Source: Pecten maximus (Eukaryota). Taken from it: a DNA stretch of 64,000 nucleotides. How positions within the stretch are numbered: the stretch's first letter is position 1; each line of letters starts with the position of its first letter. The translations under genes and the position numbers were made by a program. Below, in pieces: positions 19,367 to 42,226 of the stretch. Location of the stretch: positions 27,404,001 to 27,468,000 of the forward strand of contig NC_047018.1 of NCBI RefSeq assembly GCF_902652985.1, read 5' to 3'. The notes under the pieces are model-generated. The model had not been told where the DNA came from. It made no database searches and worked only from the letters and a program-made list of their open reading frames with translations.

Positions 19367-20623
19367 ATGGCTGAAAATGCTGATGAAGATGACCTGTTTT
19401 GGTATGACGAACAGGGAGATTCGGATTCAGAAAATGAGATGACTGATGAGGATTCTTTACTGCAAGCTATTGAGAAAAATGATCTTGCCAAAGCAGAGAA
19501 TCTTCTCGGTATCAAAGGAGTCTCACCGAATTTCGAGCGTAGGGGAAGAAGTCCCATTTGTCGAGTTGCCTGTTTAGGATATAATGATATGTTAGAATTA
19601 CTCATATCAAAGCAGAGTTGCCTGACCACGTCCTGTCAGGGCGACACCATGTGGCTCAGGCATCCCATACACCTGGCTGCTTCCAAGGGTTTCCCCAATA
19701 TCGTAAAACGTCTTGTTGAGTGTGGGGTGGATATCAACAGCAAGGACTCTGACCACCGTACACCCCTTCACTGGGCAGCCACATACGGACATACTGACAC
19801 AGCACAACTGCTGCTTCAAAAGGGGGCAGTGGTTAATGTAACACAGACTGATGGATTTACACCACTACACGCCGCCACCTGTCTTGGACATCTTAATGTT
19901 TGTAAGGTACTGATCGACAATGGTGCTGATGTAAACAGGGTTGATGCGGAGGGATGGACTGCCCTTCACACTGCAGTGTGCTATGGGCAGCCACAGGTTG
20001 TGGAGCTTCTCCTAGAAAATAGATCTACTGTCAAAGCCTTAACTTTGGATCAGAATACAACTTTGCATGTAGCGGCAAGTAGTGGGTATCTCAGTGTGAT
20101 GGAAATCTTGCTGACCCATGACTTGGATCTGAACAGGAGAAACATGCAAGGTTTTACACCATTCCACCTGGCATTTTATCACAGCAAGATCGATGCTTGT
20201 AAACTGTTAATTAAACATGGAGTAGACATCCAGACAACAGACCTTAATGGTCAGTCACCTTTGTACTTGGCTGCGGCACGGATGAATGTGAAGCTGGTTC
20301 ACCTTCTTCTGGAATCTGGATATGACTTTAGCAAGGAAAAATGGATTCGCGACAAGCAGTTTCCATTTGTTGTCCAAAAGCTACCGGCTCTTTGTGAAAT
20401 GTTGATAGAGACTGCCAGCAATCCTAAATCCCTTCAGTATATAACTTGTTTTAAGATTCGAAATCTCATTTCTGGGAATATTGTTCCAAAAATAGAGAGT
20501 TTGCCCATTCCGAATAGCTTGATAGATATTCTAGCATTTAAATGTGGACAGTTTAGCGAGGAGAATAATTCTGAGAAAGTTGCATTTTTTTCCACAATCC
20601 AACAAGCATGGGTATATACATAA
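19367..20623 (+). CDS. ankyrin repeat and SOCS box protein (ASB-like), 418 aa, single coding exon
   Basis: ~8 ankyrin repeats (TPLHWAATYG, TPLHAATCLG, TALHTAVCYG, TTLHVAASSG, TPFHLAFYHS, SPLYLAAARM). C-terminal SOCS box PKSLQYITCFKIRNLI...IESLPIPNSLIDIL. Acidic N-terminus; splice acceptors upstream at ~19255 and ~19287. Confidence 0.93.
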   Translation: MAENADEDDLFWYDEQGDSDSENEMTDEDSLLQAIEKNDLAKAENLLGIKGVSPNFERRGRSPICRVACLGYNDMLELLISKQSCLTTSCQGDTMWLRHPIHLAASKGFPNIVKRLVECGVDINSKDSDHRTPLHWAATYGHTDTAQLLLQKGAVVNVTQTDGFTPLHAATCLGHLNVCKVLIDNGADVNRVDAEGWTALHTAVCYGQPQVVELLLENRSTVKALTLDQNTTLHVAASSGYLSVMEILLTHDLDLNRRNMQGFTPFHLAFYHSKIDACKLLIKHGVDIQTTDLNGQSPLYLAAARMNVKLVHLLLESGYDFSKEKWIRDKQFPFVVQKLPALCEMLIETASNPKSLQYITCFKIRNLISGNIVPKIESLPIPNSLIDILAFKCGQFSEENNSEKVAFFSTIQQAWVYT

Positions 20624-23486: not shown

Positions 23487-24284
23487 AATACTGATAGTAT
23501 TTATAAACTTTCACCAACTTTCATGAAAAATGTAGCATGATTTCTGATGAAGCTCATAAGGAGGAGGAAATGGTGTTTTGCTGGGGTGGCTATGATCCTC
23601 CTCATGAATACATCAGTTCCGTCAATGACTGATTAATCATCTTAATGTGTAACTTTCTGGAGATGCTGAAATATGTGACAATGGAAGTAAAAACCAAAAG
23701 TCTCCAAGAGCTGTTTACAAAGGTGTTAATAAATCTAAGTAGCAACATCTCTGGCAAATTAACCTGGTTTGCGTTCATTATAGTTATATTAATTACACTA
23801 TTGAATTAAGCTTATTTCAAATTGAAACTTAAGCTGAATATGATTTAATGAGTATCTGGCTTGTATTTTTTTTTTTTTTTTTTTATTATATTTTACTCTG
23901 ACCTCACACTGCCAGGCAGACTCACAGGATTTTAAGTAGATTGTCCATTATGAATCACTATTGTAGTGAAAGTTATGTCAAAGTTTGACATACAGTTTCT
24001 GAGGAGAATTTGAAAATGAAACAATAAGAAAAGACATTGAAGGAAATAGGTGTCTTGCTTCAGCAAGTCTCCTGACAATGATTCCACATTGAGAACAAAA
24101 TTTGGATAATATTTCCTAGATGTTTATTCAACATCAAACACCATGAAATGTTTTATAGATTAACTTAACACATGTATTGTTACATGTTGAGTAAAATGTA
24201 AAAGTTTGAATAATTTTACAATAAAAAAAATCTGAAAAACCTTATCACTAATTCACTGTCAACTGTACTTGGTCCTCCCAGTCA

Positions 24285-26298
24285 CTAGTCTTTTAACTGA
24301 GCTTCGTCCTCTCTATCACTGCATATCATGGTTGGTTGTTGGTCATTATCATGTCTCTGCAGAACTTCTCTACATCTACTGCAATCCTGTTCTGTTGATC
24401 GAAGAACTACTTGTAGATCAGGGCTAAACTGTGTGGCCAGGTCAACTTCCAGCATATGACATCGAACTGAAAAAAATGAACTGAAACACTTGATACGTCA
24501 AGTTTTGTTGTTTTTTTTCTCTGAATTGCTTCAGTGAAAAACTTTACAGTATCACAAAGAATACTTCATTCAAAACATATGCATATTTACTAAGACAATA
24601 TAAGTAGGAAGTAATAACTGCAACATCCTCAAGCGTTACCGATAAGTTGGAACTTTATTGTCTACTAGTTCCGACCCTATCGCAGGGTCTTCATCAGGAC
24701 GCTTGAGGATGTTGCAGTTATTACTTCCTACTTATATTTAATTATTTACTCTAACTGCCCGGCATACCTATAAGGTATCCAGACTCAACGTGAAGTACCA
24801 CACTGAGAAAACCCACTGATTTCCAGCTGACGTTGGCTCCTTTCAGGCTTTCTCCTCCTTAGTATTTTACTAAGACAAGAATCACATGCTATTAAAATTC
24901 CCTTTAGCTAAAAACAAATCTTGAGTAGTGAGTACTAGCGGGTAATGCAAAATTTTATAAGGACTACTTATTTCTTGAACAGTAGATTTTATATTTTTCT
25001 TGGGGAAAAAAATTATTTTCACAATTAACATCAGAAATGGTAAGGAAACACAAAAGTAGCAACAATATTGTTAGATTGATAAAAGTGAAGTTTATCATAC
25101 TATATAAAATCTTACAATCATTATCAAGGTTATGCAGCATTTATTTGTCCTAGCTTCCTTGTAATAGGAAGGAGTAATGTAAAATAGCCTGCCCGTACAG
25201 GGCTTCAAACTAACAACCTCTTGTTCTCAAGGCAAAAACCATACTACTAGGCTAAGGCCTCGAATTAGTGACCTCTCATAATCAAGGCAAACATCCGACC
25301 ACCACAAAGCTAACGGGGAATTCCCACTAGCCTGAGCTCAGTAAGGTGAATTTATGCTCTCTGCTTTTACATATGTAGCAGGCCAGGCTTTAATTTTAAA
25401 TACTGTACATAGTTGTATGGTCGCCTTCTAGCTTCGGGCTAGGGGGAATTTCCCTTTAGCTCAGTCGGTAGAGCAGCGGACCAGTAAGCCGAGGGTCGTG
25501 GGTTCGATCCCTGCTGGCTGCACACTACTCCTTGAACTTTTACACATACTTACCACTGTGTTTGATCATGACCTCCTTCAGATTGTTCAGGTCTCTATTC
25601 ATGCGGTCTATTTCATTCATTGCTACATTGTGTGTGTAATTCAGAAGTTCAGGTTTGGGACATTGCACCATGTCCTTCTCTTCAACTTGACTACAATTGA
25701 AAATTGACTTCAATATCAATATTCTAATTCATGCATTAACCTATATACATTATCACATGGACAGATCCCCTCCTATTGGAGTTTACTGTGTTCTCTCATC
25801 TATCAATTTCAAATTACTTTATAATACCGGTTTAAAATTGTGCATATTTTTGTATCTTTATTAGGTTATGAAATCCTAGAAATTATTAATTTGGAGAACA
25901 GCAGAAGAATTTATTGTAACATCTCATGAGATAACTCCATTGATTATGAGCAGTAATTACAATAGCCTAGTTTCATTTAATAGGTCCTATACCGTGGCTG
26001 AACGTGCAAAATTTTAAATGTGAAAACATACTAATTACTGAAGTACAACATTATCTTCTGTTAATTACAGTGTTGATGTGGAATAGTCGGGATATCTTAG
26101 CATGCTACAGTAGTATCAAGATTTAGCTCCCTTCCATTGAGATTTGCAGGAAAATCTGCCGAAAGGGTTATTGTATTAGCCTAATATTAGAAAAGTTACT
26201 TGCTCTTATTATCATCTCTTATGTATTCTGCATCAAAACACATACCATAAACTGTACATAACTTACCATTTCCTTTGTGATCCACTAAAATTTGACAT
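24285..26298 (-). CDS. SYCE3: synaptonemal complex central element protein 3 (SYCE3)-like, 116 aa, 3 exons
   Basis: Exons 26298-26267, 25690-25554, 24466-24285 (GTAAGT donors, AG acceptors, 351 nt, open frame). Protein: MSNFSGSQRKCQVEEKDMVQCPKPELLNYTHNVAMNEIDRMNRDLNNLKEVMIKHSVRCHMLEVDLATQFSPDLQVVLRSTEQDCSRCREVLQRHDNDQQPTMICSDREDEAQLKD. It aligns by eye to human SYCE3 as recalled from memory (PEERNY...LNKDLEKLLEEMEKISV...D...NPTL...RRLE...CKE). Confidence 0.7.
24599..24865 (-). mobile_element. Penelope-like element terminal (pLTR) fragment with inverted segment
   Basis: 13-bp TSD TTTACTAAGACAA (24586-24598, 24866-24878). Perfect 40-bp inverted repeat 24597-24636 / 24699-24738. Minimal hammerhead followed by AATAAA on the minus strand. 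Confidence 0.75.
24660..24700 (-). ncRNA. minimal type I hammerhead ribozyme (Penelope-type), core variant GGAA
   Basis: Minus strand: GTC-CTGATGA-A-GACCCT-GCGAT-AGGGTC-GGAA-CTAG-TA-GAC. Palindromic stem III ACTAGT; the canonical GAAA reads GGAA. Confidence 0.75.
25450..25522 (+). pseudogene. tRNA-derived sequence (SINE head / pseudo-tRNA, AGT in the anticodon position)
   Basis: A box TAGCTCAGTCGG, D arm GCTC/GAGC and B box GGTTCGATCC are present. The acceptor stem (TTCCCTT / TGGCTGC) cannot pair and the anticodon stem has two mismatches. Confidence 0.7.
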
Positions 26299-26926
26299 TT
26301 TCTTCGAGTTGGATTTTGCCACCGTCGAAACTTCAGCTCCCACTTCAGCAGACGAGTCTCGGATTTGTTGACTTTTTTAAATGACTGATCTATTATGAAA
26401 TTTCTATTTTAATATCCTTTTTATTTGTGATTCTTACATTAATGATCACTCAAAATTATTTCATTTAAACAAAAACACAATGTTTTTATCCAATGGAAAT
26501 TTGATAGTCATTAAATGCAGTCGGACGAGTTCATTTTTGGTTGAAGGGGTGATGGCCGTATTTAGAATTAAGGATGCGTGTCTCATCACAATACACGTAA
26601 ACATAAATTAAAAACGAATTTGAAAGTTGCTTCAAATCATTCCTTCTTTTGACATCATGACCTTGGTGTCCGGAGTCAACTTTATATTTCAAACGACTTG
26701 TTGATAGATTATTAGACAACTGAGAACATGCTAGGCTAAATTCATGTAACGTGTTATAGGATAATTAGACCCTAGGTCTATCTTCCTTTTAGATGAAACA
26801 TATCTTGACCTTATATCATTCTTCAAATATGCCCAGGGAAATGGGTAATTAACTTGTATGTATGATGCATATTGTCAATATCGTATTGGGATAAGAATAT
26901 GTCAGTCTGTTTAGACCTCAGGACTC

Positions 26927-32287: not shown

Positions 32288-37148
<4,861 letters not shown>

Positions 37149-39397: not shown

Positions 39398-42226
39398 GTT
39401 CATAGTTCATAGTATTCGACGTCCTTGTAAGCTTGTGGCTTCTGTCGACGCATCTTCATGGTTGTACACTCATTTGCAGGTTGCGCAGAGGACACGTATA
39501 CAACTTTTATATATATACATTAGTAGCAAGAAGGTAAAAACTTTACTGGATGATTGACCCAATGCTTATTGAGCCTAGATTTAAAAGTATTAAGGGACGG
39601 GGAATCTACTACTGATGTGGGAAGTCGATTCCATGTATTTACAATCCTATTTTTAAAAGCTTGTCCCCTAATATTAGTGTTGTACCTAATCTTTTTAAGT
39701 TTTTTGGAATTCCCTCTAGTATTAAGGTTATCAAGTGTAGGTATTACTTGTTGATTAGATATGTCTAAATTGCTAATCAATTTATAGGTTTGAACCATGT
39801 CTGCTCTTAATCTCCTATATTCAAGTGATGGAAGTCCCAGATGACGCAGGCGTTCTGGATATGATAGATCTTTTAGTGATGGAACTAGTTTAGTGGCCCT
39901 TCTCTGGATGTTTTCTAGTGACATTTTGTCTTTCTTTAACATGGGAGACCATGTAGTGATATTTGTTTCTAAATAGGGGCGTACTAGTGACTTGTAAAGG
40001 TTTAGAAACATTTCTACATTCATACAACTAAAGGTCTTGAATATTAGGCCCAAATTTCTGTTTGCCTTTTTGATTACTGTGTTAACTTGCTCACTGAATT
40101 TTAGATTTTTGTCTACAAGTACACCGAGATCTCTTTCACATGTTACTAAATCTATTTCATGTCTAACACCTAGTTGTGTTGTTTCATATTTGTTTTCACT
40201 TTTTTCTCGGCCCAAGAATAGTCGCAGATGTTTGCACTTGTCCGAGTTTAGCTCCATCAGCCATTTATCTGTCCATTCACAGACTTTATCAATATCATTC
40301 TGGAGAGATGTTCCATTATCACCTTGAATTGATGGTTTATATAGCTTGGCATCGTCGGTGATATAAATTAGAAAAAGTAAGGGCCCCAGTACACTCCCTT
40401 GTGGAACTCCACTGGTGACCTTTCTAGTGGTTGAGTGCTGTCCACTTACAATTACTTCCTGCGTCATATCCTTGACGAAATCTTGTATCCACTCCAAAAG
40501 TTCTCCTTTAATACCGTACCCTTCTACTTTTGTTAATAGCCTTTTATGTGGGACCTTGTCGAAAGCTTTTTTAAAATCTAAATAAATGGCATCAATTTGT
40601 TGGTTTTTGTCCAGGGCTTCTGTCCAGTCTTCCAAAGTTTCTAAAAGTTGTGTTGTACAAGATCGCCCACTTCTGAATCCGTGTTGATTTGTTGATAGTA
40701 GTTTGTTGTCTTCAAGATGTTTAACAATATCATCTCTAATAATTGATTGTAGAAGTTTACCAACGACTGATGTTAAGCTGATGGGTCTGTAATATCCTGG
40801 ATTTTTTTTACTACCTTTTTTGAAAATTGGTGTGACTAATGCATGTTTCCATTCAGCTGGCAATTTCCGTGTTTGTATCGATTTCCGAAAAATAATTTCC
40901 AATGGTTTGATAATCTCATTAGCTGTTTCTTTGATAAGGCGGGGATGAATTTGGTCTGGGCCTGGAGATTTGTTGGCTTTAAGTTTATTTATGGCTTTTC
41001 GTATTTTTTTTTCTGTGATGACAAGGGAACTGATGGTGTTTTGTGTCCGGGTGGGAAATTCAGGAGGTTCGTTTGGGCCTTCGTCGACAAATACACTGGC
41101 AAATTGATAATTCAGAGTCTCTGCTTTTTCCTTGTCATTAGTTGTCAATTCTCCATTTGTTTTTTCTAGCTGTGTAACTTTATCTTTTGTTTTTGTTTTT
41201 TTGCGGACGTAATTCCAGAATAATTTGGGATCGGACTTGATTTTACTGGCCATTTGCTTTTCGTAGTGATGCTGTTGGCTCCTGATCGCTTTGGTTGCTT
41301 TGTTCCTAGCATCTTTATATTTTGTGAAGTTTTCAGGAGATTTGAGGTGTTGATATTTTTTCCAAAGAGTTCTTTTTTTCCTAATCACTTCTAGTGTCGT
41401 TCTGTCTAGCACATGGGTACCTTTCATGTTGCCTGGTCGTTCTTTGCTCACTGGTATATGGTGTTCAGTAACTATTGATAATGTATCAGCAAAAAATTTC
41501 CAGGCTTCATCCAGGCCCATGTTGTCCATAGCATCCCAAGTTACTGCTCGGAGATTGTGACGTATAGCATTGTAGTTTCCTCTGTTATAATTTTTTTTTG
41601 AGTTTGAGGGTGGTGGTTCTTCACTAAAACAGGTGAGTTTAAAACTTAATGACAGATGGTCACTGAGACCTAGGCCGGCATTGTACGAGATGTTTTCTAT
41701 CATATTTTCCTCATTGGTAAAAACAAGGTCGAGCAATGAGGGTTCATTTCCTTCTCTAAAACGGGTAGGTTCCCTTACATGCTGGTATAGAAAGTTATCC
41801 ATTGTTAAATCGAGGAATTTTGAAGCAATGTGATCCACTCCTACTGAAGTGCTAAATGTTGTCCAGTTAATTTCCTTAAGGTTAAAGTCACCCGTGATCA
41901 ATAGATGTGATGGTTTAATATTTTGAACAGACCTGAAGTGGTCTACCAATTCTTGGAAATTTTCTTGGGTGCTGTTTGGGCTACGATAAATACATCCTAA
42001 AAGCAGGGAGTCTTTACTGCTTAGTTTTACTGAGCACCAGACTGATTCCTGATATTCTAAGTTGTCAATCTGAATACAGTTTATATTGTTTTTAACATAA
42101 ACTACAATCCCCCTTCTACAGTTTGAATATGCGCTGTTGTTAAACTGGTTGTAGCCCTCAATGTTGTAAGACATAGACCAGGGTTCGAGTTTGGATCTTT
42201 TGGGGAGAATTTCAATCAGCTGGATT
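39398..42226 (-). mobile_element. 5'-truncated CR1-clade LINE
   Basis: 7-bp TSD AATGTTA (39391-39397, 42227-42233); short tandem 3' tail (ACTATGA)n; ORF2 with APE endonuclease and RT motifs. Confidence 0.9.
39520..42174 (-). pseudogene. LINE ORF2 (APE endonuclease + reverse transcriptase), N-truncated, in-frame deletion at the RT active site
   Basis: GCIYRSP, ITGDFN, LDLVFTN, SDH (endonuclease); YRPISLTS, QHGFR, YLDFKKAFDKVPH, GVPQGSVLGPLLFLIYI (RT). The expected ND...(F/Y)ADD segment is collapsed to IYITDD. Confidence 0.9.

Follow-up and report, generated by a model that had tools for sequence, protein, structure and literature searches.

SYCE3 is a helix-loop-helix protein with Pro-53 in its loop, and mutagenesis of the mammalian protein has shown that Tyr-11, Leu-15, Trp-41, Tyr-44 and the Pro-53 loop govern its higher-order assembly (PMC6556580). 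Its coding sequence in the mouse lies on two exons, and the paper that named the protein described it as present in all vertebrate classes (PMC3102746). A survey from 2014 confines SYCE3-like scores to vertebrate groups and cites Fraune et al. 2013 for the statement that "SYCE3 is specific for Vertebrata" (PMC4132317). SYCE2, TEX12, SYCE1 and SIX6OS1, which are likewise short helical proteins of the synaptonemal complex central element, have been traced to non-vertebrates (PMC13693662 and, again citing Fraune et al. 2013, PMC4132317). A paper of October 2026 credits a sea anemone with all mammalian-type synaptonemal-complex proteins save SYCE3 and a second HORMAD (PMC13693662). Searches of the literature, including searches by the locus names of the proteins discussed below, returned no report of an invertebrate SYCE3. 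Here, we describe the gene LOC117325682 on the minus strand of a 64,000-nucleotide stretch of the genome of the king scallop Pecten maximus (assembly GCF_902652985.1, contig NC_047018.1, positions 27,404,001 to 27,468,000; hereafter the window, with position 1 as its first letter). It is a single-copy gene of three exons, and we consider it likely that its product is a helix-hinge-helix homologue, probably an orthologue, of vertebrate SYCE3, for which we infer a role in the central element.

The coding sequence extends from 26298 to 24285 and specifies a product of 116 amino acids in an intact frame. The gene is made up as follows.

26299..26409, minus strand: 5´ untranslated region (UTR) of exon 1, minimum extent (X2 contig record 7 reaches 26409 and X1 record 1 reaches 26347).
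26267..26298, minus strand: coding part of exon 1, comprising the ATG, nine codons and the TG of codon 11 (MSNFSGSQRK), from the translation and from the junction 25690/26267 in two runs.
25691..26266, minus strand: intron 1, 576 nt, GT..AG, phase 2, skipped in X1 and X2 contigs.
25554..25690, minus strand: exon 2, 137 nt, from C11 (part) to S56 plus the first base of the V57 codon, carrying most of helix 1; 100% identity to P0003 residues 12-56, and present in X1 and X2 contigs.
24467..25553, minus strand: intron 2, 1087 nt, GT..AG, phase 1, inside the V57 codon, with a SINE-like repeat and a 40-nt perfect inverted repeat; skipped in X1 and X2 contigs.
24285..24466, minus strand: coding part of exon 3, from V57 (part) to D116, and the stop codon TAG (24287..24285); 100% identity to P0003 residues 57-116.
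24254..24284, minus strand: 3´ UTR, minimum extent (X1 contig record 1 reaches 24254).

Codon 11 is split TG/T (Cys) by intron 1 and codon 57 is split G/TT (Val) by intron 2. Each intron has the donor GTAAGT and an acceptor consisting of a pyrimidine tract followed by AG. Transcript contigs from four public runs were compared with positions 23900-26500 (2,601 letters), and both junctions were found to be exact in contigs of two runs from two studies, where the introns read CT..AC on the plus strand, i.e. GT..AG on the minus strand. The spliced contigs, X1 record 1 (431 nt, word depth 269) and X2 record 7 (416 nt), jointly span 24254..26409 and give UTRs of at least 111 nt (5´) and at least 31 nt (3´). 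In the remaining two runs, matches are confined to repeats within intron 2. The RefSeq entry "uncharacterized protein LOC117325682 [Pecten maximus]" (P0003, 116 aa) is identical to the translations of all three exons, with exon 1 and the split codon accounting for residues 1-11, and it matches a single locus in the 918-Mb assembly. The locus is thus a real, spliced and transcribed gene. The first-pass annotation had read from the letters alone a spliced three-exon frame of 116 codons in what it took to be an invertebrate genome, and had asked for spliced transcripts; the frame is confirmed, spliced transcripts exist, and the genome is that of a mollusc. Its description of the gene as hidden was overstated: the gene is absent from an unspliced list of open reading frames because its coding sequence is spliced, and is annotated in RefSeq without a name, as the identity to LOC117325682 makes plain. 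The idea of a chance reading frame or a transcribed pseudogene has nothing but the small size of the gene in its favour and is very improbable in view of the precise splicing in two studies, the intact frame, the 72-76% identity to orthologues in three other scallop genera and the presence of recognisable relatives in other phyla. Comparison by hand of the contigs with the assembly revealed two replacements, C105S (24322 C>G, plus strand) and N32S (25628 T>C), both toward the residue of the other scallops, and a synonymous difference at 24360 (L92).

The relationship to SYCE3 became apparent in searches with full-length database proteins (P0001, P0003 and others), whereas the exons of the window were searched one by one. 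Exon 2, compared with a library of 1.84 billion representative sequences, had one match, the uncharacterized 116-residue protein LOC110442796 of Mizuhopecten yessoensis, and a search with that protein then retrieved P0003. The gathering cut-off of Pfam family PF15191 (Synaptonemal_3) is 27 bits, a working threshold trained largely on chordate sequences. PF15191 ranks first for P0003 (22.6 bits, E 9.7e-5) and likewise for its three scallop orthologues, from Mizuhopecten (21.8 bits), Ylistrum (21.3 bits) and Argopecten (27.9 bits); among the four, only the last exceeds the cut-off. Beyond the scallops, a hemichordate protein scores 25.6 bits, PF15191 is the top family for two coral proteins (E 0.0035 and 0.044), and it is matched at E <= 0.1 by 13 of 23 family members. 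A precomputed Pfam column assigns PF15191 to the Argopecten and Ptychodera proteins. Searches of 177,635 sequences from the Protein Data Bank (PDB) agree with this. The single Mizuhopecten sequence finds SYCE3 first (4r3q/6h86, E 0.013), a profile of seven molluscs finds it at E 5.6e-4 (residues 11-83), and a profile of six non-mollusc sequences, from a hemichordate, urchin and coral plus one unnamed sequence and with nothing in common with the mollusc profile, finds it at E 4.1e-6 (residues 4-78). With 23 invertebrate sequences in the profile, SYCE3 is reached at E 1.6e-6 and 31.4 bits over residues 6-83 of 88, the next chain being at E 2.8. For the three profiles, the next-best chains lie at E 0.76-5.5, and SYCE3 is the only meaningful match. 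The HMMER alignment is collinear, with one gap of a single residue, in the hinge, and a small composition bias term of 1.2 bits. Since broadening of the profile raises the score, disjoint profiles agree and no competitor appears in the PDB, the pattern is that expected of true remote homology rather than of coiled-coil composition, and on sequence grounds the homology to SYCE3 is significant at the profile level and extends over almost the full length. The resemblance noted in the first-pass annotation, which had proposed a search with the Synaptonemal_3 family, is thereby supported, with SYCE3 at the top in every full-length test.

A language-model atlas of proteins gave a similar picture. 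Three PF15191 clusters take the lead, at 0.88-0.92 and with 187-208 shared features, whether the query is a scallop orthologue or the C-terminal half of a coral protein. Next in the ranking are RCDG1 (PF15725), BORCS7 (PF16088), BORCS8 and GCN5L1/BLOC1S1, which share the size and the helical hairpin but reach only 0.77-0.87 and have no HMMER match to the family in Pfam or the PDB. SYCE2, TEX12, SYCE1 and SIX6OS1 are absent from the family's matches in Pfam, the PDB and the atlas, and no sequence relationship to them was seen. One ESM Atlas cluster carries the name "(California timema) hypothetical protein". It has 219 members, mostly chordate and 55% with PF15191, and its name comes from a stick-insect record, which represents an arthropod protein similar to SYCE3 or else is mislabelled or a contaminant.

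At the level of residues, the scallop protein and mouse SYCE3 (4R3Q; see also 6H86) are alike in being small, with two helices and a short proline-containing loop, and in aligning collinearly over SYCE3 residues 4-83 of 88. An AlphaFold2 (AF2) model based on the family alignment has a helix at 31-69, a break at 70-71 and a helix at 72-98, with core pLDDT of 95-99. Two elements stand out in the gene, and the positions listed after them lie opposite each other in the HMMER alignment.

24420..24466, minus strand: signature block VRCHMLEVDLATQFSP (V57-P72), comprising the end of helix 1, the hinge and the loop proline, from the mollusc and 23-sequence alignments and AF2.
24372..24383, minus strand: C85-S-R-C88, a CxxC pair in helix 2, with C85 and C88 invariant in 23 sequences from four phyla.
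Mouse V37: scallop V57.
Mouse W41: scallop M61.
Mouse Y44: scallop V64.
Mouse D45: scallop D65.
Mouse P53: scallop P72.
Mouse F66: scallop C85.
Mouse C69 (the single Cys of mouse SYCE3): scallop C88.

Residues conserved between scallop and mouse are L45/L25, S56-V57/S36-V37, D65/D45, P72/P53, L74/L55, R79/R60 and C88/C69. The loop proline P72 is invariant in the 23 sequences and aligns with Pro-53 of SYCE3, and the AF2 model has the helix-loop-helix. The aromatic pair of the mammalian protein is lacking: HMMER places M61 and V64 at the Trp-41 and Tyr-44 positions, the same replacement that had been read by eye, and both positions are aliphatic in 23 of 23 invertebrate members. The position of mouse Tyr-11 is occupied by histidine in the scallops (H31) and the hemichordate and by tyrosine in urchins and corals, offsets determined by counting residues backwards from S-V in the member sequences, and the N-terminal helix of the coral protein (Y-E-N-M-I) aligns without gaps with mouse Y-D-N-M-L. 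Judged from the alignment with the residues reported to matter for SYCE3 assembly, the Tyr-11 position and the loop proline are thus conserved in kind, and the Trp-41/Tyr-44 patch is not. Most of the correspondences proposed by eye reappear in the HMMER alignment, i.e. MNRDLNNLKEVMIKHSV against the end of SYCE3 helix 1, DL/DM, SPDL/NPTL, LRSTE/MRRLE and CRE/CKE. The exception is PELLNY/PEERNY, which is off by two residues: the HMMER alignment, ungapped here, sets scallop Y29 opposite mouse R9 and H31 opposite Y11.

The invertebrate members have a signature of their own. They share the motif V-R-C-H-x-L-x-VDLATQF-x-P together with CxxC, the fuller form of the block being S-V-R-C-H-M-L-E-V-D-L-A-T-Q-F-[SN]-P. 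Across seven molluscs, 15 of the 16 columns of V57-P72 are scored as invariant, with variation recorded at T68 and S71; in the 23-sequence alignment L62, V64, F70 and P72 are invariant and D65, L66, A67 and T68 nearly so. Compared with vertebrate SYCE3, the hinge lacks one residue and hardly varies (VDLATQF-x-P), CxxC stands where vertebrates have FxxC, and many members have Cys-His at 59-60. The scallop protein is further distinguished by an N-terminal extension of about 20 residues, with an additional intron in it, and by an acidic C-terminal tail. The Cys-His pair (C59-H60), present in most but not all members, lies about one helical turn from CxxC across the hairpin, and the four residues C59, H60, C85 and C88 could form a metal or disulfide site. 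A zinc site of this composition was considered as a feature of the family and rejected, since neither C59 nor H60 is constant across gastropods and urchins, which leaves CxxC as the only family constant.

Several observations weigh against the assignment to SYCE3 or against a meiotic role. P0003 itself falls short of the PF15191 cut-off. Single exons matched no Pfam family and gave chance-level hits only in the PDB (E >= 0.7), with no SYCE3 even at E <= 10, and exon 3 found no homologue in a word-indexed protein search. Foldseek with the monomer model had no match in the PDB, and VIA-align against 48,161 representatives returned generic long coiled coils at Z of about 5, among which SYCE3 was indistinguishable. 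Trp-41 and Tyr-44, which are needed for assembly of mammalian SYCE3, are unconserved in the invertebrate members. Transcription is seen in the X1 and X2 RNA runs, of unspecified tissue, and meiotic expression is a prediction. Six-frame scans of the 918-Mb genome with the Pfam models of TEX12 (PF15219) and SYCE1 (PF15233) gave chance-level hits only, such scans being too insensitive for short split exons. The large open reading frames of the window include nothing that resembles the neighbourhood of vertebrate SYCE3, a comparison with the human locus that was given no weight. The fold searches are uninformative because the monomer model appears extended, and they were not used as evidence. Another reading is that the family is unrelated to SYCE3 and that the likeness reflects convergence among short helical-hairpin coiled coils of similar composition. 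In its favour, individual scores are no more than modest (15-28 bits), the sequences share little pairwise identity, hairpins of helices are a common architecture and no specific match came from the structure searches. However, SYCE3 alone scores among the 177,635 PDB sequences, thousands of coiled coils among them, and does so with three profiles, two of them disjoint; moreover, the alignments are collinear from end to end with a single one-residue gap, match up the proline of the loop as well as the Asp and the Cys, and have a small bias term of 1.2 bits. Convergence is on this balance quite improbable, and homology to SYCE3 is the reading that we carry forward.

The structure of the gene can be compared with that of the mouse as well. 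Intron 2 (phase 1, within the V57 codon) immediately precedes the signature block, and V57 aligns with mouse V37. There are indirect signs in protein models that the same boundary occurs in other molluscs. Unrelated insertions sit precisely before V57 in an isoform from Mytilus (P0016) and in a model resembling Pomacea (P0027), and in many genomic calls of the open-reading-frame type (P0023, P0025, P0031, P0033, P0035 and P0044) homology starts at V57 after a stretch rich in Phe, Leu and Val, the read-through of a pyrimidine tract. Intron 1 is located within the N-terminal extension, which has no vertebrate counterpart, and only intron 2 therefore interrupts the SYCE3-homologous part, just as one intron interrupts the homologous coding part in the mouse, where the coding sequence is on two exons (PMC3102746).

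The distribution of the family bears on orthology. A search of 5.8 billion proteins with the seven-mollusc profile identified 49 relatives, whose hosts are mussels, many gastropods, a chiton, the hemichordate Ptychodera flava, two sea urchins and the coral Porites evermanni, in addition to unnamed proteins from metagenomes and transcriptomes. None of the relatives that bear a species name is from a vertebrate. The invertebrate form and vertebrate SYCE3 are therefore complementary in their distribution, as orthologues would be. A six-frame scan of the 918-Mb genome with PF15191 revealed no better candidate elsewhere, the best others being at E 0.6-0.75, in a scan insensitive enough to have missed the present locus too. 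The single copy, the lack of a competing candidate and the lack of a vertebrate co-orthologue of the invertebrate type support orthology and, given the insensitivity of six-frame scans, do not amount to proof. The scallop protein thus appears to be a homologue, and most likely an orthologue, of vertebrate SYCE3. The hemichordate and sea urchin members place the family within the deuterostomes, and the coral members date its origin to the cnidarian-bilaterian ancestor or before. An origin in the bilaterian ancestor, as suggested in the first-pass annotation, is accordingly supported and was probably too modest. Mizuhopecten yessoensis has a second, more divergent copy (P0010, LOC110466489; 57% identity, 113 aa), and the Pecten maximus assembly has one locus.

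The mouse and human proteins suggest, by analogy, that two chains of the scallop protein would pack as an antiparallel four-helix bundle and that the proline hinge might open for end-on assembly. The protein would reside in the central element of the synaptonemal complex and, in meiotic prophase, form the link between SYCP1, the transverse-filament protein, and the remaining proteins of the central element. Another possibility is that the protein is a true SYCE3 homologue with a different job in invertebrates, e.g. as a small coiled-coil adaptor outside the synaptonemal complex, and that recruitment to the central element took place in vertebrates only. The aliphatic residues at the Trp-41 and Tyr-44 positions of every invertebrate member would fit such a division, as would the invariant CxxC and the rigid VDLATQF hinge, which have no counterpart in vertebrate SYCE3, and the expression in runs of unspecified tissue, at a high word depth (269) in one of them. 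Against this, the Tyr-11 position still has Tyr or His, the aspartate (D45/D65) and the proline of the loop are retained, as are the heptad pattern and the overall helix lengths, and a small single-copy gene kept in four phyla fits a core function. Furthermore, other central-element proteins have been reported in non-vertebrate animals (PMC13693662; PMC4132317), so that a set of partners probably exists. We regard a different job as unlikely and favour a place in the central element.

A broader scenario can be drawn from these comparisons, which we consider possible but hold tentatively, as it falls somewhat short of being probable. SYCE3 would date to the cnidarian-bilaterian ancestor or earlier, and the full mammalian-type central-element set would be ancestral to eumetazoans. 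The ancestral protein would have had the rigid VDLATQF-x-P hinge and the CxxC, the latter possibly as an inter-chain metal or disulfide site, and the Trp-41/Tyr-44 patch would be a later vertebrate replacement, i.e. a different assembly chemistry on the same scaffold.

Intron 2 contains two repeats. At 24597-24738, a perfect 40-nt inverted repeat has 62 nt between its arms; in other runs, contigs align to it imperfectly, and in one contig the two arms are linked on opposite strands. The element is probably a small repeat able to form a hairpin, similar to a miniature inverted-repeat transposable element (MITE), that is transcribed elsewhere in the genome. The stretch at 25372-25552 has a tRNA-like head (GGG..TAGCTCAGTCGGTAGAGC..GGTTCGATCC) and is found in many contigs of all four runs at 95-99% identity, with very high summed depth and loose ends on both sides. 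ARAGORN detected no intact tRNA in this stretch, which is probably a tRNA-derived short interspersed nuclear element (SINE). Elsewhere in the window, an intronless open reading frame of 418 aa with ankyrin repeats is located at 19367-20623 (plus strand), and it may end in a SOCS box at the C-terminus, in which case the protein would be of the ASB type. An intact frame of 884 aa at 39520-42174 (minus strand) has endonuclease and reverse-transcriptase motifs of the type found in long interspersed nuclear elements (LINEs). Two minisatellite arrays, at 32485-32901 and 34010-35061, read as long repetitive frames on both strands. An exon-like frame at 36831-37118 (minus strand) with an adenylate-kinase (AK) P-loop (GPPGSGKGT...LSSGDLLR) probably belongs to a neighbouring gene of the AK type, and an exon of an ABC transporter is also among the large frames.

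In conclusion, LOC117325682 is best regarded as an extension of a known family and not as a new kind of system, because the databases half-see it already, with one scallop orthologue passing the Pfam cut-off. The family contradicts the repeated statement in the literature that SYCE3 is restricted to vertebrates. If the assignment is true, the occurrence of SYCE3 in molluscs, hemichordates, echinoderms and corals closes a stated gap, and the full set of central-element proteins becomes ancestral. Groups that study meiosis outside the vertebrates would gain a concrete candidate. Comparison of the invertebrate signature, i.e. the hinge and the CxxC without Trp-41 and Tyr-44, with the mutagenesis of the mammalian protein may offer a route to learning which parts of SYCE3 assembly are ancestral.

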